A DNA stretch of 63,358 bases, filler included, from Lenisia limosa (Eukaryota; Protista; Breviatea), in the NCBI GenBank assembly GCA_001655205.1. It is 4 parts of 4 records of this genome, joined end to end, with 100 filler letters (N's around TTAATTAATTAA, not from the genome) between each part and the next. Parts side by side here need not be neighbours in the genome. Positions count along the whole stretch, not along the records: positions 15,736 to 39,982 come from LPNZ01007215.1; 3 more parts are not named here. One strand, 5' to 3'. The stretch's first letter is position 1, and the number at the start of each line of letters is the position of its first letter. Shown one piece after another: positions 15,736 through 39,982 of the stretch. A model generated the notes under the pieces. It did not search any database. It worked only from the letters and a program-made list of their open reading frames with translations, and had not been told where the DNA came from. The translations under genes were made by a program, and so were the position numbers.

Positions 15736-15943
15736 CCCTGTTCGTTTATTACGTCCCATAGAGACGGACCTGTAATGTTATCCGTTGGGCAAAACCGTCA
15801 TGTCAATACCGCCTTTTTCACAAAAAAAAAATCTTTGGTATCTCCTTTTTTATTTTTGCAGTAAAGCGTGAATATAAAGAAACTCATACTGATTCATTAA
15901 TGACTAAAGACAACCAGTCGTATGGAACAAGGCAGCAGCTCAC

Positions 15944-17590
15944 CAAGGAGGTCCATAACCAGCACCAAATGGTCGTGGTATCCGAAGATGGGTTGGTCCG
16001 ACCTGATAGTGTCAAATGTAACATCGAACTTGGGTTTTCTTCGGATACCCAAACACAATAGTTATGTCAATCATTTATTAAATAGTCTTCTCTTTATCTT
16101 TCCCTCACCATAACCAGTCAAAGTCCCCCGTCATTACCTCGCGAATCCAAGGTAGTGCATGACGGGTCCTACCGGCCTGCCCTGAAGAGCCTTGGCAACC
16201 TCCGCCTCCCAAACAAGTTTGTGGATATTGAGGGGGTCGCGGTTGGAGATCTGAGGTGTCAAGAGGATGTGAAATAGAATAGAGGCTAGACTGAAAGATT
16301 GAACAATATGTATATAATAAAAGAGGGCTTTTCACTTTGGTTCAGAATATAATAACAGTTCATTATATATACCAGTATCCGCCATCTAAAACAGCCTGAG
16401 CGGACCTTGATAGCCACCTTGCGGCCCGTGGCGTTGAACTTGCCTTTGAGTACGGTACCGGCGTTTCCGGCACCGACGGCTTGATAGTCTGCCTCCCAGC
16501 CCTCCACAATCTCCATCGACTGGGGGGTTGATAAAGACATTTAGTAGAAGCTCTTCTGTTAAGTTGTAATGTATGGTGACTCCCTCATAAAAAAAAGTAT
16601 ACTTAATATATATTACAAAAAGAAGTACTTTTTTTGGTTGCAAGGAGTTAATTCCTCCACATCTGCAACAAAGCATTACTGCACTCACTTTCGGTGGAAA
16701 TAGGTCGAATATTTGCTCGCGCACGTTTACATCAGCCTTAACATCGAAGTCCTTCGCAATTAACAGAATAAGATGAGCAGATTACCACATAACAATGTCT
16801 CCGCACCAACACACACACACAAACGAGGACTTATTGACCAATATTCTCCACAGTGTATAGCAGCTGTCCATATTTTGAGTGAGAGGGATATAATCCGAAA
16901 TGAAACCTGCTCAAACATAAAACAAACAACAATGATAATGAAATTATTGTTTAATAATAACCACCAGTAAACAAGGTGCTGAAGAGTTCCCGATCACACG
17001 ACTGATTAAAGTAAAACCCCTCCCAACCTTAACAGCCTGGTCAGAATGATCGAAGGGCTCAAGGGTAAACGGATTCTCCCATGCGGGTGGATACTGTGCA
17101 AAGTTACAAGGAGAGAGAGCAGGGAAAGGTGACAACAAGGAGAATGGGTGAGCTGGAAAGAATCTGATACAAGCAATCTGAGTCACAATCATTTATATTC
17201 TCACAAACCTTTACAACAAGATCGGTCTCAAGGTAAACTTTGCCCCAGGGAGTTGTAACCGGCCTCAATGCGAAATGAAGCCACTGATTAATTCTCCACT
17301 CACTCTCCTCCACACGTTCTTCTTGAAGAAGTCCACATGCCTTAGCAAATAAGAGCTACAGGTCTTCGGAGAAAATCTAAAACAAACTGAAGCCTGCAAA
17401 CCCTTTCTGATGGGGCAATTGGAGAGTCAGTATCAAGGATATCTCCAAAATCGGGGGGTATAGGCTCCGGTATCAACTGTAACGTAGCTGCAGATATAAA
17501 TGAAGACTAGAAAACAAGAAAACGTTCATTTTATGACCCTACGCATTATGGGACTTCTATTTCAGCCGCATTCTCAGCAGGGATCAAGCT
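15944..17590 (-). CDS. Ser/Thr protein kinase (N-lobe seen, CK1-like) with a long N-terminal extension; C-lobe lost at a scaffold join
   Basis: VGAGNAGTVLKGKFNATGRKVAIK|ISNRDPLNIHKLVWEAEVAKAL...|...HDHLVLVMDLL|G gives the Gly loop, VAIK lysine, alphaC Glu and a CK1-type LVMDLLG. Upstream GT-AG exons between 16690 and 17590 join in the same orientation. Confidence 0.75.
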
Positions 17591-17802
17591 TAGAAATAAA
17601 GTGAAAAGATTGGATGACTGGATTTAATAGAACTCTACAAATATAACCTAAAATACTCTACATACACTACTTTACAACCTAGGAATCTCGGGATTTATAA
17701 AAAAAAAATATTTCAACCCCCACCTTTGTGATCATCTGATCGTAAAAGATATTTGACAATTTCCTCCTTACCCCAGCTTACCCCAAGCTTACCCCTTTTC
17801 CA

Positions 17803-18188
17803 ATGGCTAAAACAGAAGAGGTATGTCAGTATTTGATAAATTGCCTGATAATTTTCTATTTACTTACTTGCGCTCTATGAAAACCGGAAGTCCTATTGAT
17901 CAATCGTAGATCGCAAGCCTCTTAGAGGGCTACACCGAAGAAGAGCTGGATATGACAGTTGAAGAGTATATTGAGAAGGTGGGAATGGAAGAATCAAAAT
18001 ATTCTTGCAAGTTGTGGAGTGGGTTAATTGACAGTATCACTTAATTATCTATTCTATCATCTTTATTACTTAAGCAATGCGAACTTGCCACCAGCAAAAT
18101 TGAAAAGAAGTGTCAAGATGCTATTGAGGCATTTGTTGAAGAGGCGTCTTTGATACAGAGCAAGCTGGAGGCCCAGGCGGAACAATGA
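17803..18188 (+). CDS. 66-aa three-exon protein resembling the survivin/Bir1/BORI C-terminal helix alone (no BIR or FHA domain)
   Basis: Exons 17803-17820, 17910-17978 and 18075-18188 are all phase 0: MAKTEEIASLLEGYTEEELDMTVEEYIEKQCELATSKIEKKCQDAIEAFVEEASLIQSKLEAQAEQ*. The gene model is solid; the family call rests on recalled motif similarity (ELDMTVEE[WY]I followed by an amphipathic helix). Confidence 0.7.
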
Positions 18189-18763
18189 GCATTTGACNNN
18201 NNNNNNNNNNNNNNNNNNNNNNNNNNNNNNNNNNNNNNNNNNNNNAGATAGGGAAGTGACCCTATTAGGTGAGTGGATTTTGGTTTGTTGTGAGAACACT
18301 TTTTTTTTTGTTGTTTTTTTGTTGTTTTATGAATTATCCATATCGATATGCATTATATTATGCCCAGTGCTGCACTTCGGTTCGAAAAAACGTTAATAGT
18401 ATCCTAAGAAAGAAAAATAAACACCAGAAGGACAATAGAGAGGTTTAGTAAATAAAAAGAAGCAAATTTTGAAAACATTAATTAATCCCAAGGTTTATGC
18501 GGAGCACCATATAAGTTTTTGGCCTCCCAATGAAAAAAAAAAGCGTCATTAAAAGCGTCATTTCAGGCCTCAGACCCCCTGACCTCATGAAGATATCTGA
18601 TATATTTTCAAAATTTGAGGTAAACAAATAGCCCTCACAAATCTTTGTTTCATGCAATTTTTTGATTAAAAAATATATTCAAACTTGTTAGTTTTTCGAA
18701 ATAATTGTCCATTTAAAACTGTAATAGGTGAACTCTCATTTACATCAGAATTAAAATCTTGTA

Positions 18764-21489: not shown

Positions 21490-24400
21490 ATGACGGAGGA
21501 GACGACCTACCAGGTCATTGGGCTCAAGGCCCCCTCGATCAGAACGCGACGACAATGTCGCATGTAAGGCAGTGAGGGACTCTGTCGGCATGCTGCATGC
21601 ACTGGGGGGGGGGGGCANNNNNNNNNNNNNNNNNNNNNNNNNNNNNNNNNNNNNNNNNNNNNNNNNNNNNNNNNNNNNNNNNNNNNNNNNNNNNATTTTT
21701 AACACAATTTATCAAACGTTCAGAAGTGTGAACTGGAATCGCACAAAGAGATGTCCCATTGCTACCCACTTGTAGAGAATGTTAAACCTCTCTTCAGCCA
21801 CTTCCATGTATGAAGATGACACACCTTCTCCATCTCCCTTAAGCACTTGCTAGAGGAAATGTAAGAATGTGGATCGAACTTTTCAACATAATGACGGAGG
21901 AAAATATTCGATTTTTGCGTAATCAATGCGATGTAACTCAAAGAGAATCACATAAAAGGGGAGGGGGGTGTACTACCTAAATTATACATTGCCTTCGCCG
22001 TGCCATTCATTACCCGCGTACTTTACAGTCCTGGACCAAGTTGTAGAGGCGTTGGAGCTGCTTGGCACTGAGTGCTGACTGAAACGGTCAAACACAATCG
22101 GCAATAAATACATATGAGACTCCATTAGGCTATATTAAACGACTGAACAGTCTCGATGAAGTTCCTAGAGGAGGTGACAAAGGGGAAAGCCCTTTTCATG
22201 GCAACAAGAGAAATTTACAGCCAAAGACGGTCAAAATTAACAACTAGAGTCACTTGAATCAAACCATCCACAACCTCTTTGATGGGGGTGCAAGGCAAGG
22301 GGCTCAGTCCAAGGAGAACGGAAATGGAGGATTCCACCACCACGTCCCAGAGCTGATGACGTCAATGTGTCAATAAACATGATATCATATAGTAAATACT
22401 AGTACATATACTGTATCATCATACGATCTATTCTATGTAGCTAGAGATTCAGAAACATCCTAGTAGGCAAGCTGATCTCTATTGCGGACCTCCCCTCCTA
22501 CTGTTCGAGCAACGACAAGCAAACTGTCCCCACTCGTCCTATATAGTCAAAATAGTACACATAGGAACGTGCTATTTGAAAAATAAATTAACAAATATAT
22601 ATATACAGTACATGTATAGTATACGTACTACATGTATGGAATGGGGTTTACAATACGACTCACTTCAATTTGAATTCAATTCTAGATTGATTGGTTGCAC
22701 TGAGTAATACCAACCAACTTTCCAAATAGTTTGAGAGCTTGTCAAGTATTTCTATCTCAAAACCTTATTCAAAAAAGAACGAAAAGAACAGAGCACAATA
22801 TGTTTATAATACCAATAATAAAACGGGGCAAGAAGATCCCATTTGCTCACTTATCGGACAAAAACGCCAGAAGGTCGTCGATCGTGGTGTATGCATCAAA
22901 TACCTCTTCCGTGACCTCGGACAGTAAAAAGAACAAATCAGCAGGTGAGGGTTTGGTCCTGAAATATGTACATCCTCTTCAGAAGTCACTCTCTCTTATA
23001 GATATGATAACACATCTTGACCACCCAAAAGAATCCGTTTCATTTATTAAGTCTCAAAAAATATCTATTAGCTGGTACAGGTCCACCCACATCGTGGACA
23101 ACGTATTCGAAGATGCCTGGTCTGATGATCATAGCGTGCCATGTGGCTAGACACGCGGACGTCACGCGACTCGCCGATCTATTGATTTAGGGGGTAAAAG
23201 AGATGCACTATGTAGCCTGAAAAACCTCGATTACAAATAGAAAAAAAACACCAAGTACTCATTCTTCATGGTAGTATTGGATCCAGAAAAAAACGTATCA
23301 TACAAATATAACTTAGGTATTATGCTGGTCCAAACCAACCTGAGGTCCTGCAGAATGTCCATAACCACCACTTCGAGCTCCGAGCCATCTTCGATCTCGT
23401 CCCATATGTAGCGGTCACAAAGATCATCAGCCCGATCCGCAGCTTCCCGTGCCGTATTATTGGCCGACACCAGCTCGACAGGGGCTAAATACTCCGACAG
23501 AGGTCCGTCTTTCTCATTGAGTCCGGCCGCGAAGGACAAGAATACTGCTGACCAATCCTCTGACTTCAGCGTTTTGGTCCTCTTTTTAGCTGACTTGAGA
23601 CGGAGAGCCTCGGCTTTGGCAGTTATTTTGGCTGCTTTTTTGGGGTCGGACTCTGTGTCGTCTGGGTAGGGGGGGGGGGGGNNNNNNNNNNNNNNNNNNN
23701 NNNNNNNNNNNNNNNNNNNNNNNNNNNNNNNNNNNNNNNNNNNNNNNNNGGTCATTATTTGACGGCTTTTTAATGGTCTAGAATCATTCAAGATATTATA
23801 GAATGATAATGTACATACAAACATAATACACATGCAAAATAAAATATCATATGATGTGTCATAAACAAATTCAAAATGACTATAGAAAATAAAATATCGG
23901 CGTTTATTAGAATAAGGACTATACCCCAGATTGCATACAATCAACAGTAACCACGTGCCATAAACTCCAAATTGCCGGCCTTGAAGCTGCCACAGCCTCC
24001 GCCGCTGTGGGGTGGACAGATACACTAGAGGGGTGAATGTGGGGGAGAGAGGAGGGATGGGTGGGTATGTCTACAAGCCCTTATTCAGATGTGATGCTAA
24101 AAAGGGTGGCAATTGATGACATATTAAAGGGACAGTCGACTTATTTACTATTACACAAATCCCACTAGAGCCCCACGATGGAAGGCTCTGAGCAGCTTGA
24201 ACCAGTCCGGGGCGGGTGTGAGGGGTGAGAGAGGGCAACACAAGCTTGAAGGCCGCGCTACATATTATCAGAAACAACAAACAATTCTCTGAAAGGTGCA
24301 AGATCGAAAGATCAAAATATTCAGAGGAAAGAGCACTACTATTATCGCCCCTCACTGCGATTGTGAGAGCGCCAAAAGCCGCAAAAGAGGCAGGCCCACT

Positions 24401-27400
24401 CTAATACAAAGCTCGGTTGTGAGGGGAGGATTGGAACCAGTCTACATTGCCAGTGTCNNNNNNNNNNNNNNNNNNNNNNNNNNNNNNNNNNNNNNNNNNN
24501 NNNNNNNNNNNNNNNATAACTATTGATAAAGTTGTTCAAAAGAAACATAATACACGTCATTATACACGCTTTTTCGTTATTAACCCAAACCTCGATAAAT
24601 GCTAAGTCGCCAAGGAACTCTACTGCCGCCTAAGATGATAAGAAGGAATGAGAATAGGGTCACGGAAATCAAATAATTACATACAATCTGATCAGAATAA
24701 CCATCATTATAAGAACCAAAATGAAGACAAGATAACTATCACACAAATTCCAACCTGGAACGCTGCCAAAGTGTCGATGATGCTGAAGTCCGCATAGTTT
24801 GCTGCCTTCGTGTCCATTTTCGACGCAGTGATCGCCTGTATCAATAAGAACCATTCAGACTGAAGGGTTACTAAGTTCAACCAAAGGAATGTGACTCAGA
24901 CCCCCCCCCCCCNNNNNNNNNNNNNNNNNNNNNNNNNNNNNNNNNNNNNNNNNNNNNNNNNNNNNNNNNNNNNNNNNNNNNNNNNNNNNNNNNNNNNNNN
25001 NNNNNNNNNNNNNNNNNNNNNNNNNNNNNNNNNNNNNNNNNNNNNNNNNNNNNNNNNNNNNNNNNNNNNNNNNNNNNNNNNNNNNNNNNNNNNNNNNNNN
25101 NNNNNNNNNNNNNNNNNNNNNNNNNNNNNNNNNNCTGCATTTTGGACTTGAGACTATGAGATTCAGAACTTCAGAAATCAGAACGTTACTTGTTGACAGG
25201 TATTATTAGTATTCTTATTTCAACCTTTTACACGCTGTGACAGCTTCAGCCCCCCCAACCTGTCAACAAGTGTAGTGGGCCGTGGACCTTCGGGCAGGTC
25301 TTCCCACAACGAATTCACCTGAGGTAAGAAGAGGAAAAACGGCTTATGAAAGACAGTGGTCACTTCGAAAAATCAAAGGATATTTTACAAATTCATTTCA
25401 TGTTGTCAAGAGAACCTCCAAACTTCAACACTTACCTGCACCGCTAACTCCAGTATTTCCTTAACATCCATTCCGGGTTCTGACCGCCACTGTCTCATCA
25501 TGATCATGAGATCCTCATGGAAGGACTCGAGGTAAACAGGCCGGATAATGCGGAGAAGAGATATGTCACATACTGAAAAATGAAGAAGCAAAACGACATC
25601 GATAGTGGCGCATTTCAAAGACTTCCTTGACCAAGTGGTGTATGGCGAGTGGCGCATTTCAATGACTTACTTGACCAAGTGGTGTATGGCGTATAAATAA
25701 AACAATTTAGCTTTCAGATTGTACCAGCTTACACGAACGGAATACAGGGCTGAGTTCGGCTTCTATTTCAGTCTCATGCTCCAAGAAAGAGATCAGGACA
25801 CGGGCTTCTGTTGGCGTGATCGCTCCCAGGGGATTGTTTACTTGCGTATCAGGCTGGAGTGTGGTTAGTGGCTGAAATGGCTTTGAATACGAGACATTCT
25901 CTCCTAAATGCAACCCAAACGCTTTTGGAAACATCAATAAATAATGGAATGCGACAGTGAGCTTCGTCTCTATATGGGACAGAACCACATACCATCATTG
26001 AGGCAGCAAGCAGCTTAATGCGTTGGTATCTTGAGTAGGCAGCTGACGTGAGGATTGTCATTAGGGCGGCAACCAACGCGTCGTGAGCACGGGGCTGGAG
26101 GTCTACGGTCCCCGGGCTGGGTGTTAGACTGACCAAACAGATATAATGCCTCGGAGGGGAAGTACTGAGGATCTGACCCAAATCTTGATTTTGGTGTTCA
26201 GATTAGAATATGTTGGCTCAGGAGACAAGAATCTAATTTGTCGAAAGGAGTTAACGCCAACACCTCAACAACACAGCATGGCATGGTTTTTCTGATCAAA
26301 GAGGCATAGTTTCCAATACCTACCCAGTACTGAGACGAGCGAGCGCGCGTTTACGTGCCTCTGGAAGTGGCGCCCCCTGTAAGTTCAGTTCAGTTCAGTT
26401 CAGTTCAGTTGGAATTGAAATTTGAAACGCATATGTTTTTTTTGCGGATATTAAAGCTGTCAAATCAATTCAAATTTGTTCCCCATCACATTCAGTGTTA
26501 CATTCAAGAGAAAATATAACATGCAAACCTGGGGGTTTTCTTCGCCATGTCGAGCGGGGTTGGCAGGGTGAGACATCCACATGTCCTCCAACTAAAACCG
26601 GTAAAAAGGCTTAACTATTTGATGAATAAGTGTCTCTACAAAAATGCAATACAGAAGATGAAATAAATACTGTGCCCATTAACCTTCTGGTAAATTAAAT
26701 ACGATATTCCAACCCACAGCAAAAGTGGACTTGACAACATTTAGTGTATCTGCCAGGCTCTCTTGATCAGAAGACTCGCGATAGAAGTGCTACAGAATAA
26801 GAATTGTCTCTAAAATGGGGGTGACACTGCGGAGACAACCACCATACGCGGTAGTTTTTCACATGTGCAATAGACTCGATTTTTGCAGTTTCAATAGCTT
26901 CGGTAATTACAGTAGCCTCCAATCGAGATACCGGCACACCCCTGTGGTTTGATCAAATGCGACGCAATCCCTGATACTCAATTCGGGGCCATTCAACTTA
27001 ATAATACACCGACCCTCCTTTCAGACAAGAGAATCCCAATAAATATCGATCATACTTCAACCATTCTAAACGCATACCGAACAGTCAGCGTAGACGTCAA
27101 CTCCTTTTCTGCGGTTTTGATGTTTTGGAAATGCTCACTCGTGTTATTGAATTCACTCGATAGTGTTTCTGCGAGGTCAAAGCACAAATTTAAGTATATA
27201 ACCACGACACCCAATTTGTCACGTTGATATGGTAACATTGAATCTTTTACCCCCAGACTGAGCCAGAGCGCTTGGGCCATACCCCGTCTGAGGCCAAGGA
27301 ATTGTTCCATCTCAAGAGAGATCCATCCAAGTACTCCTTTTGCCTGTGGGATGTGAGTAATACATGCATGAGTGGTTGTTTTGCTGAGCAAGAAAAATTC

Positions 27401-34489: not shown

Positions 34490-36947
34490 GGGAAAGCAAG
34501 ACGTTGTTACTACCAATTTTCAAAATCTCAACTAACCAGGAGGCTGGGGGTGTTTGAACGTAACCATGAAACGTCGGTATTTTTAACAGAGTGTTTCAAT
34601 TTGTTCAGTAAAGATGACTCTGACCTAACTTGATTTATAGTGTGAAGCAAGCATGTTACCTACTGAAGTATCATGCATCCAATATCTCAATGGGAGGGGC
34701 ACCACATATTTCCGAGGTGTACGAGGCTGTCAAAACAATCAAAAGAGAGATTGATACATTTGAAAAACTCCAATTTCAAAGTATCCAAGATGACTTGCAG
34801 TTAGTTTGGTGTGTATTGATCACTTTCAAGTCTAGCCAAGGATCTGAAAATTCAATTGACTGATTTACATTAAGCTGCCCTTGAAATGAACTCAGATATT
34901 GATATGTTCAACAACATTTGCAATAAATACCACTCAAAACTGACAAATATTGGATTTAAGATCAAGGTTGGTGGAATTAGATTTCATTACCAAATATAAT
35001 ACTGAAAATGAAATGAAATTTATCATTAATTATTTATAGGTTGCCATTTCGAACAGCCTTGACAACCCAGATAAATGTTCTGAGTTGAGTGCCCTCATTC
35101 AAACTAAAAAGACCATCATGAAGTCGTTTATGAAACAAATGAAGAGCTTACCTTCTTTTAGTCATTCACGTCAATCCACCAGCTCAGGTTTGAGGAGTTC
35201 TTTCGAAATAATAATGTGATATTTTATTATTTTTATAATCAGAAATATATTAGTTAGAAGAGATTAACAGATTAGTTCCAAAGCACAAAGAGGTAGAACT
35301 TATTGAAGAGAAATTTGGTGTCTTTATTGAAAAACAGCAATTTCTCCAAACGGTCAACAACAAAGCACGTAAAGAATGTGCAGACGCTGAAAAGGTATAT
35401 AAGTTTATCTCATGCCTGTCATCAAGCGATGATCTCACCTCTCTTGATAAGGTTAGAGAATGGATTTGTTGGTACTGGGTTTTATTACAAACTCTGATTT
35501 CCATTCATAACCATTTAGGCTCTTATTAACTTCTGTCAAGGGCCTGATGACCTCAAAACCCAGTTATCAAGCTGTTTGCACAACCTTGGGTGGTTAATCT
35601 ATAAAACAAGAAAAATATAAATAAGGATATCCAGCTATCTCAGTATTATATCGCTCAGATTTATATTCTCAAGGCTGGTACATGAGGCTGTTGACCGTCC
35701 TGATGCATCTGAGGTTATTCAAGCGCTTCATAAGGTATGGATGTTGTAAGTGTCCAAAAGGGCACTATTGAGTTGTCTGAAATCCCTACAAATGTATTTA
35801 TTATATATATTTACTGAAGAAGATGAGTAATCAAATCTAATGCAATTATTATTGTGTAAAGTATATTGAGAATGTCGGATTGATTCCCCTCAGATTCGTG
35901 CTAAATTGGACACTACACAATCGTATCCGAAATTCGACATCCCAGCAGTCACCTCCTACACGGTATAATACTCGAGAAACTTGTGTTAATGTAGCTTGAC
36001 TCAATTGAAATTTATGTATACGATTTAGTATGATATATTATTTCGCAAAGAGAAAAAAAATTAAAGATGTATCNNNNNNNNNNNNNNNNNNNNNNNNNNN
36101 NNNNNNNNNNNNNNNNNNNNNNNNNNNNNNNNNACAACATGATATAACTAATACTGATATGCCTCTCACAGAAAAGCCAGGTAACCTCAGTCCCCAATTT
36201 AGTAGGGTCAATACCCTCATACAATTAGAACCTCCCTACGCTCCGAAAAAGACCGGTAAAATATCGATATTTATCGAGGATTTATCGAGAAATTCAGTCT
36301 GTTACTTTGAAATGCGCAATTGCTAATTTCTATATTACTTACATTTACATTTACCATGTCAGCTACTGCGAATGCGAGATGTAACCCTCAACAGTGAAGG
36401 AAATCAAACTGTACTTATCCAGAAATTGCGTTAACGGTACGTAAAGTTTTTCTTAATTTCAACTAGGGTCATCAGAATTCTGTGGTAACCGGAAAGCGAT
36501 GCATAAAATCAAGGTAAAATATTCAATCATGATTAGATCAACAAGATGTATGTGGTCGAAAACCGATGATTGTGGACCGAATATTTGGATCAGAGACAAG
36601 ATATTGCCAATTCGCCAAAAATCATACGTGGTGTCGAGGTCAGTTTCATTTGATCTGTTTCACAAGAATTTTACGTTCCATCCTTAGTGTAGTTTTGTAA
36701 TGAGTGCAACTGACAGAGTAGACCCTTGTCAAAGATTGGACCATTGGATCGCTCTTGACAACATCAGGGGAGGTGATTTTGATGTACAGCTGCAATTCCA
36801 TGGTTTGTTGACAATAATCAATATCATCCATTTGCTATTGTATCAATTGTGTACTTATAGGCCTTAGAAACCATCAAACATCAAGGATTCAATCACCTGT
36901 TCGACAGTGAAAATGCCTACGGTCAAGGAGTCCATTTCACAGATCAA
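34490..36947 (+). CDS. Hypothetical multi-exon protein with a TPR-like helix and PARP/ART-like catalytic motifs (possibly degenerate)
   Basis: Open exons VAISNSLDNPDKC.., LEEINRLVPK.., TQLSSCLHNLG (TPR-like), QLQFHG and ALETIKHQGFNHLFDSENAYGQGVHFTDQ. Exon phases around FHG do not join cleanly. Confidence 0.4.
36228..36305 (-). mobile_element. MITE family B, degenerate copy (one TIR intact)
   Basis: TA|gaacctccctacgctccgaaaaagaccggtaaaatatcgatatttatcgaggatttatcgagaaattcagtc is the reverse complement of the 39033 copy. Confidence 0.8.
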
Positions 36948-37384: not shown

Positions 37385-39982
37385 AGAGTCAGCCTTGGAA
37401 AGGTCGTCACTACCACTGTTGAGCAAAGGAAGGTTGGATGGCTTAATCAAATGGATTACTACGGTTTGAAGTCCACAGTAACATCGTTTCTGGGTAACGT
37501 TTGTTCAACTCTCACATTCCATCGCACAACGCCTGCAGCCACTCCCTCTTGTCCCTGGGCGACCACAGAGTATTTACAACCTTCCTCAAGCATCAGGTAG
37601 CATTTTCGCGGGATAGTAACGTATTTCAGAATATTTGAATTTTGAAAAAGAAATTATGTTGTCGTCGCAACTTTCAGCCCCCCCCCCCCNNNNNNNNNNN
37701 NNNNNNNNNNNNNNNNNNNNNNNNNNNNNNNNNNNNNNNNNNNNNNNNNNNCATTTAGTGCTACCCTGAATATGTTCTGAGCTATCATGGGACTAATTGG
37801 CTTGGAGTTCTCTGTTCCATTTGTTACTTATTTTTGTTATTGTACATTTTCTTTCAGTTTAAAATGCAGCCTCCTCAGCGACTTATTTTGCTAAACTAGA
37901 TATCTTTAAAATTCCTAGTTTGCAACAAATACCTCTGTGGGTTTTATTCTAACGTGGTGATTGGTTGAGGGGAATACATCCCATGTTATTACCCAAATAT
38001 GAATTTTAAAAAAAACTCCATTTCCAAGCCCTACTACTACCAAGCTTGTTTGACTGATGATGGCCGTGCTGGTGACCCTGAACCTCTCCTAAGAAGGTTA
38101 AAATTATTCAAATCCCATGTTTTGCTACTAGTTTCAACATTGAGCTGATTCCATATAGCTGTATAAACATGTAGTAAATAAAATGTAACATAATACAAGA
38201 ATCAGAATTGAAACTCACGATGATACTCTTGATATTTTCGGATCTTTAGGGGCTCTAGAGAGTAAGTAACACAGTGAGTATATAAAAATGCTAATAACTG
38301 TGAACATCACAATGATAATAAACCGAAAGCAACTCTCCACCCTGTGACATACGGGCTCTCAGGCATGGGTGTGGCACCCCTCGATTCTGTGAGGGCGGGT
38401 GATGACGATGATGGTGGCGACTCCCCACGCTCAATCTATTAGGTATCAGGAAAGATAATATATCAAAAAAACAATCAACTTTTCACTGAAGCGAGTTAGC
38501 CTCGTTTCTGCACCTCTCACTCCCTTCTATTAAAGCAGAACTGTCAATAAAAAGCATTTTGACAAAATACATAACATACAACTCTTTTTACAAATTTCTC
38601 CCTTCGCAGCCCACCTCAGCCATGACCTCCACATCATCAAGAATACTCTGAGGGACATTGCTTAGCATTTCAGCCAATGTCCGAGCCTGTAGCTGGTCCA
38701 CGTGTCCTCTACTGCCTGTAGGGAGGGGGGGGGGTGAACANNNNNNNNNNNNNNNNNNNNNNNNNNNNNNNNNNNNNNNNNNNNNNNNNNNNNNNNNNNN
38801 NNNNNNNNNNNNNNNNNNNNNNNNNNNNNNNNACCCTTGCTGATATTCTTATACAAAACTGGTTTGCTCACCATCAGCGTTTTTCAGTACCCTTTCGACC
38901 TTTGTAAACTTCATTGACTCCGCCCTGTCTAAGGCTGTTTCACCCTAAAACGTCAAATATGACTCACATATATGTATTCACTAGTATTTCATCAGTAATC
39001 AACACCTTCAACCATTTTCTCATTTGTCTCATGGCTTTCACATGGTCCCAAAAATGACTGAATTTCTCGATAAATCCTCGATAAATATCGATATTTGACC
39101 GGTCTTTTTCGGACCGTAGGGAAGCCTTAATTGTCCCGCATGCCTTGTGGCTGGCTTTTGAGGGTTCGGCACCGCATTCGAGGAGAAAGCTCGTGAGCTC
39201 GTCGTTGTCAACCGCCTGAAAGTGGAGGCTGTTGCATCCCTGGAAGGGTTAAATGCGGCCACCAGACGGAGCTGAAGTTATTGAAATAGTCTGAAGGAGA
39301 CTCAAACCCGACGAAAAATACCTACAAAATCAACCCAAGAAAGATGCCCCCCATCTCATCTCACCAAACTGTGTAACACATTCGCTTCACCCCCTCCCCC
39401 TCTCACGTCATCGTCCTCAGCCTTCACATCCGCGCCTTTGGACACCAAATGTGCAATTGTGGCCATATCACTACCCTCCTGGATGGCCTTGTGCAGCGGT
39501 GTGCGACCCTGGATGAATGACTAATTTTCAATGCCACGTATCCTGTAACATGTCAGTGGTCCCAATAATACTCAGAATCGCACGTTATTTCAGTCCATAG
39601 TCATTATCTATCAATAAAAGTGTAGAAATAAGGAACCAAATTATCGTTTCTTGCTACCTTTGTGGATTTATGGTTGATGCCAGCGCCAAGGGAAGTCAGG
39701 TACGATATCAAGTCAATCTTGTTGCCGATGGCGGCGATGTGCAATGGGGTCAAGCCCTGGACAAAGGATTGTTGAGTAATCGATTGGGGTAATGTAAAGA
39801 ATGTAGAAGCAAAATTCAAACTCCACTATTTCAAAGAAGAAACACAATTGGATATCGTAGTCAACATCAAATTATCCTATTAGATGCTCCCTGAGCCCAC
39901 CTGTAGGGCTACGGGGGAGTGATGCGATCCGCCTGCAATCAAGGCCTTGGCCACCGGCACCGATCCGGAGAAGGCGGCAACA
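37385..39982 (-). CDS. Ankyrin-repeat protein with a Ser/Pro-rich tail; 5' end truncated at a scaffold join; 3' end approximate
   Basis: GLTPLHIAAIGNKIDLISYLTSLGAGINHKSTK|GRTPLHKAIQEG..LVSKGADVKAEDDD|GCNSLHF..LLECGAEPSKASHK|GETALDRA; consecutive phase-0 ankyrin exons. Confidence 0.85.
39033..39127 (+). mobile_element. MITE family B copy in an ankyrin-gene intron
   Basis: ggctttcacatggtcccaaaaatgac...gtctttttcggaccgtagggaagcct|TA. Confidence 0.85.

Follow-up and report, generated by a model that had tools for sequence, protein, structure and literature searches.

The Survivin/BORI family of chromosomal passenger complex (CPC) subunits is defined by a coiled-coil helix of 47 residues, to which a BIR or an FHA domain is accessory, and membership of the family is recognised by an HMM specific for that helix or by profile searches in both directions (Komaki 2022, PMC9680938). 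Short homologues that consist of the helix only have been described from five eukaryotic groups, and this form has been proposed to be the ancestral state (Komaki 2022, PMC9680938). These helix-only proteins have a single coiled-coil-forming C-terminal helix and neither BIR nor FHA (PMC9680938), which is also the predicted organisation of the 66-aa protein described here. The helix of the latter is about 45 residues long as compared to the 47 residues of the family (PMC9680938).

In yeast Bir1, the substitutions W901A and A931E,I935E abolish CPC binding (PMC3084670). In both plant BORI1/2, which carry an FHA domain at the N-terminus, and yeast Bir1, which has BIR, Borealin and INCENP are bound by the C-terminal helix. 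Nbl1 of budding yeast, a helix-only Borealin of about 70 residues, shows that reduction to a single helix is possible for a CPC scaffold subunit; Nbl1, however, sits in a different strand of the three-helix bundle from the survivin strand. Compared with BORI1/2 and Bir1, the 66-aa protein is smaller by a factor of roughly nine to fourteen and lacks their FHA or BIR; when set beside the helix-only Survivin/BORI proteins, it would be near the minimum size possible.

The window analysed is a stretch of 63,358 nucleotides, filler included, and the micro-gene encoding this protein lies in the part of it at positions 15736 to 39982, hereafter the piece. It consists of eukaryotic draft sequence that is broken by many assembly gaps and has a GC content of 28-45%, and the introns across the locus are short (55-276 nt) with a weak consensus. 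The features of the micro-gene and its upstream neighbour are:

15736 to 17600, minus strand: CK1-like protein kinase gene, the divergent neighbour, with at least 9 exons, cut by the left edge of the piece
17601 to 17792, no strand assigned: intergenic region of about 190 bp, common to the divergent kinase gene; presumed promoter and unsampled part of the 5' UTR
17793 to 17802, plus strand: sampled 5' UTR; the RNA contig has 26 letters before its first joint (17793-17818)
17803 to 17820, plus strand: coding part of exon 1, ATG and 5 codons, MAKTEE (6 aa)
17821 to 17909, plus strand: intron 1, 89 nt, GTATGT..TAG; the polyA RNA contig shows its joint, the DNA run does not
17910 to 17978, plus strand: exon 2, 23 codons; contains EELDMTVEEYIEK, aligned to EELTLGEFLKL of human survivin
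17979 to 18074, plus strand: intron 2, 96 nt, GTGGGA..AAG; in frame but interrupted by TAA at 18042
18075 to 18188, plus strand: coding part of exon 3, 37 codons and TGA; predicted to form a single continuous helix
18189 to 18197, plus strand: start of the 3' UTR; positions 221-329 of the RNA contig (109 nt) continue across the assembly gap at 18198-18245

The expression and splicing of the locus were assessed over 15736-18197 with two runs of the same organism from one study, one of DNA and one of polyA RNA-Seq. A polyA RNA contig of 329 nt joins 17818/20 to 17908/10 and 17975/78 to 18072/75, both joints having GT..AG ends, and in the DNA run the sequence of the micro-gene is unspliced. The micro-gene is separately transcribed, and its polyadenylated mRNA is spliced as predicted. 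The joined ORF encodes 66 aa from three exons (6 + 23 + 37 aa, then TGA), and its stop codon (TGA, 18186-18188) is contained in the RNA contig and followed there by untranslated sequence. This three-exon ORF had been drawn in an earlier note on the DNA; it does translate to 66 aa, both of its joints occur in the polyA RNA contig, and the micro-gene is missing from the mechanical ORF list, as was stated there.

It could be argued that the transcript is a short spliced non-coding RNA from a bidirectional promoter and that its 66-codon frame is fortuitous; no relatives were found to show conservation, and the RNA support consists of the contigs of a single run. Nevertheless, the ORF takes up 201 of the approximately 329 nt of the RNA and is open only with both splices, just 0.13% of shuffles of the spliced RNA contain an ORF that runs for 66 codons or more from ATG to stop, the GC content is 0.45 in the exons as compared to 0.32 in the introns, and the predicted product is a near-perfect helix. 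A non-functional ORF is accordingly considered improbable, and the three-exon micro-gene is very probably a real gene.

The 5' end of the RNA contig lies at about 17793, approximately 10 nt before the ATG, with no upstream joint, and an in-frame TAA is found at 17743, 60 nt upstream of the ATG. Together they uphold the ATG at 17803 and the lack of an upstream exon, both of which had been put forward for this gene from the DNA. The closeness of the contig end to the ATG would also suit a 5'-incomplete model, in which an unsampled upstream exon enters at one of two possible AG acceptors (17775 and 17786, after pyrimidine-rich runs and downstream of the in-frame stop at 17743) and adds a domain, possibly a reader. 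Such an exon is very unlikely, as no RNA contig is present over 17601-17792, the next 1.9 kb upstream is occupied by an expressed gene on the opposite strand, and the plus-strand ORF pieces scanned upstream are without a Pfam match. The intergenic region between the two genes also holds a TATA-like site within an A-run near 17697-17710, some 100 nt ahead of the ATG, which speaks against it as well. A direct repeat of AGCTTACCCC (CTTACCCCAGCTTACCCCAAGCTTACCCC) is located at 17760-17802, directly before the ATG.

The 66-aa protein has a mass of 7.5 kDa and a pI of 4.1, and contains 16 Glu, no Pro and one Gly (position 13); E, K and A together make up nearly half of its residues. Exon 3 alone was predicted by AlphaFold2 as one helix (H2-36) with a pLDDT of 96.3. 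Residues 1-19 would form a short N-terminal lead-in, and residues from about 20 to 64 one long amphipathic helix reaching the C-terminus. Such a helix would have no fold of its own and would probably work by packing into a hetero-oligomeric helical bundle.

With regard to a reader domain, neither BIR nor FHA was matched by Pfam in the exons or in ten plus-strand ORF pieces between 15.8 and 19.7 kb, and these ten pieces had no match to any other domain either. The product thus carries neither the one or two N-terminal BIR domains of survivin in the strict sense (animals, fungi) nor an FHA domain preceding or following the helix, as in BORI (Viridiplantae) or the reversed form (Stramenopila, Haptista). 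The mostly C-terminal coiled-coil helix of about 47 residues that characterises Survivin/BORI proteins in general has a predicted counterpart here, the aligned helix spanning residues 20-64 of 66. Two further points of the earlier note are therefore borne out, namely the helical nature of the product (exon 3 predicted as one helix, no Pro in the whole protein and the sole Gly at position 13) and the missing BIR or FHA domain, on which the blank Pfam scans and the RNA contig without an upstream exon agree.

The resemblance to survivin was examined by local alignment (BLOSUM62) of the joined model with residues 90-142 of human survivin, taken from peptide tables in two papers. The best local alignment pairs residues 20-64 of the model with survivin 95-139, over 45 residues and without a gap, and it stops 2 and 3 residues short of the respective C-termini. 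Identity extends to about 11 of the 45 aligned positions (approximately 24%), and the similarity is not significant at database scale. Where human survivin (BIRC5) has L-T-L-G-E-F, the 66-aa protein has M-T-V-E-E-Y, and the hydrophobic positions 98, 101, 102, 109, 113, 124, 128, 131 and 135 of human survivin coincide in the two. The motif MT[VL]E[EQ][WY], given in the earlier note as common to the family, was not found printed in the literature searched. Unlike the 66-aa protein, human survivin has a BIR zinc-finger domain, and its helix is rich in lysine and arginine, whereas the 66-aa protein is acidic. By spacing, and not by alignment, W901, A931 and I935 of Bir1 (30 and 34 residues from the first) correspond to F101, V131 and I135 of human survivin and to Y26, I56 and L60 of the model; in the local alignment, the latter three stand opposite the three human residues.

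The alignment score is 51 as compared to 27 +/- 5 for plain and heptad-preserving shuffles (p about 6e-4), but for a search of PDB size it amounts to an E of about 100, so that many unrelated coiled coils would score equally, and the apparent significance is inflated because the candidate was chosen by a reader seeking this very motif. As one comparison fixed in advance the evidence would count as fair, and for a candidate chosen in this way it is much weaker. The reversed-sequence control of the same pairwise comparison reached 40, which means that the shuffles understate the null and that real coiled coils give a fatter one. The survivin likeness is suggestive, being at the level of sequence a lead and not proof.

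The database searches were run per exon, with exon 2 and exon 3 as separate queries, and such short exon queries have little power for distant relatives. Phmmer against the PDB gave no match for exon 3 and only an unrelated chain (E 0.91) for exon 2, and survivin was not among the PDB matches to single exons. Likewise, no candidate was obtained by a word search with the open frame containing exon 3, no match to exon 3 among 1.84 billion representatives, nothing informative for the exon sequence in the ESM Atlas, and no match in metagenome contigs to degenerate DNA patterns for two peptides. A Pfam match of exon sequence to HTH_MCM7 was below threshold and was rejected. Because an identical 37-residue match would be highly significant, the protein is absent from the public protein sets searched, even within a longer product; the word search and the 1.84 billion representatives compared with exon 3 hold no trace of it, in line with the proposal that annotation had missed this gene.

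These results leave room for an unrelated small protein of the coiled-coil type, perhaps confined to its lineage. It could belong to another helical-bundle complex, such as a small subunit of the kinetochore, vesicle-tethering, mediator-type or mitochondrial kind, and its survivin likeness would then be no more than is ordinary between charged amphipathic helices. The lack of a homologue at any level searched per exon, the survivin score that is not significant at database scale beside a reversed control of 40, and a composition dominated by E, K and A are all consistent with an unrelated protein, and we regard it as a distinct possibility, somewhat short of an even chance. On the other hand, no other family was matched either, and the survivin alignment is ungapped, covers the full helix, is co-terminal, and places aromatic or hydrophobic residues at what are, by spacing, the three key Bir1 positions.

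The other strand of the same three-helix bundle offers a further candidate, since a helix-only Borealin of the Nbl1 type would fit the size and composition, budding yeast Nbl1 being similarly small. However, Nbl1_Borealin_N (PF10444) was not matched by exon 2 or exon 3, scanned separately in Pfam at E up to 10, and no Borealin chain appeared in the per-exon PDB searches; the chance that the protein is of this type is taken to be slight.

The 66-aa protein is tentatively interpreted as a Survivin/BORI-type CPC helix in the helix-only form known from several protist groups, with a rough probability of 0.38. No other single identity is as likely as this survivin-type reading; the remaining small coiled-coil families are about as probable when summed, but individually they have no support. 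The proposal of a survivin in the earlier note thus holds for the gene model, the ATG and the absence of BIR and FHA, and its identity as survivin is not established, the exon searches being blank and the pairwise score weak. A survivin without a reader, as proposed there, is not something new, having already been described in the form of helix-only Survivin/BORI homologues (Komaki 2022, PMC9680938).

If the protein is of the survivin type, its helix would pack into a bundle together with those at the N-termini of Borealin and INCENP. Y26, I56 and L60 would then take the places of F101, V131 and I135 in human survivin, equivalent by spacing to Bir1 W901, A931 and I935. The reading of chromatin marks would fall to other parts of the complex. 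The protein would also represent a near-smallest example, at 66 residues, of the reader-less CPC scaffold subunit proposed by Komaki to be ancestral. It would lend itself to structural studies of the three-helix bundle and to the question of how centromeres are located by a complex that lacks an H3T3ph reader.

The evolutionary meaning of such a protein would depend on the lineage. Where helix-only forms are already known it would be one more member, and in a fungus, an animal or a plant it would indicate secondary loss of the reader domain. If the survivin of the lineage always has a reader (BIR in fungi and animals; FHA in plants, stramenopiles and haptophytes), the 66-aa protein would be a secondarily stripped minimal survivin, and centromere targeting of the CPC would proceed wholly via other contacts (for example Borealin-nucleosome, Shugoshin or kinetochore-bound INCENP), a scenario that is considered improbable. 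Whatever its identity, an expressed, intron-split micro-gene that is missing from the public protein sets exemplifies a general blind spot of annotation.

The kinase gene upstream is represented by an RNA contig of 1388 nt with 8 CT..AC joints, extending from the left edge to about 17600. As this gene lies on the opposite strand and reaches up to about 17600, the kinase gene and the micro-gene are divergent and approximately 190-200 bp apart. The joined translation of the kinase gene shows GAGNAGTV...VAIK and LVMDLLGPSL, and one of its exons gave a weak Pkinase match in Pfam. The CK1-like kinase has an N-terminal extension of about 130 residues, and its introns measure 55-276 nt.

Elsewhere in the piece, no Rfam families or tRNAs were found, and the Pfam scan of the other ORFs returned only an ankyrin repeat and the weak kinase match. 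Two genomic ORFs that were looked up had no entry. A protein-like open frame of 149 aa at 23234-23680 (minus strand) adjoins an assembly gap, and it gave no Pfam match, word-search homologue or Atlas lead. A tandem duplication at 25604-25691 consists of a 44-nt unit with 95% identity. The ankyrin-repeat open frame at 39607-39825 (minus strand; Pfam Ank and Ank_3, E about 4e-5) probably belongs, as an exon, to a gene close to the right edge. Two arms of 79 nt, at 36221-36299 and 39056-39134 and separated by 2.8 kb, form an inverted repeat with 92% complementarity; the open frames in which they lie encode ...ISIFIEDLSRNSV..., which suggests that they are copies of a repeated or mobile element.
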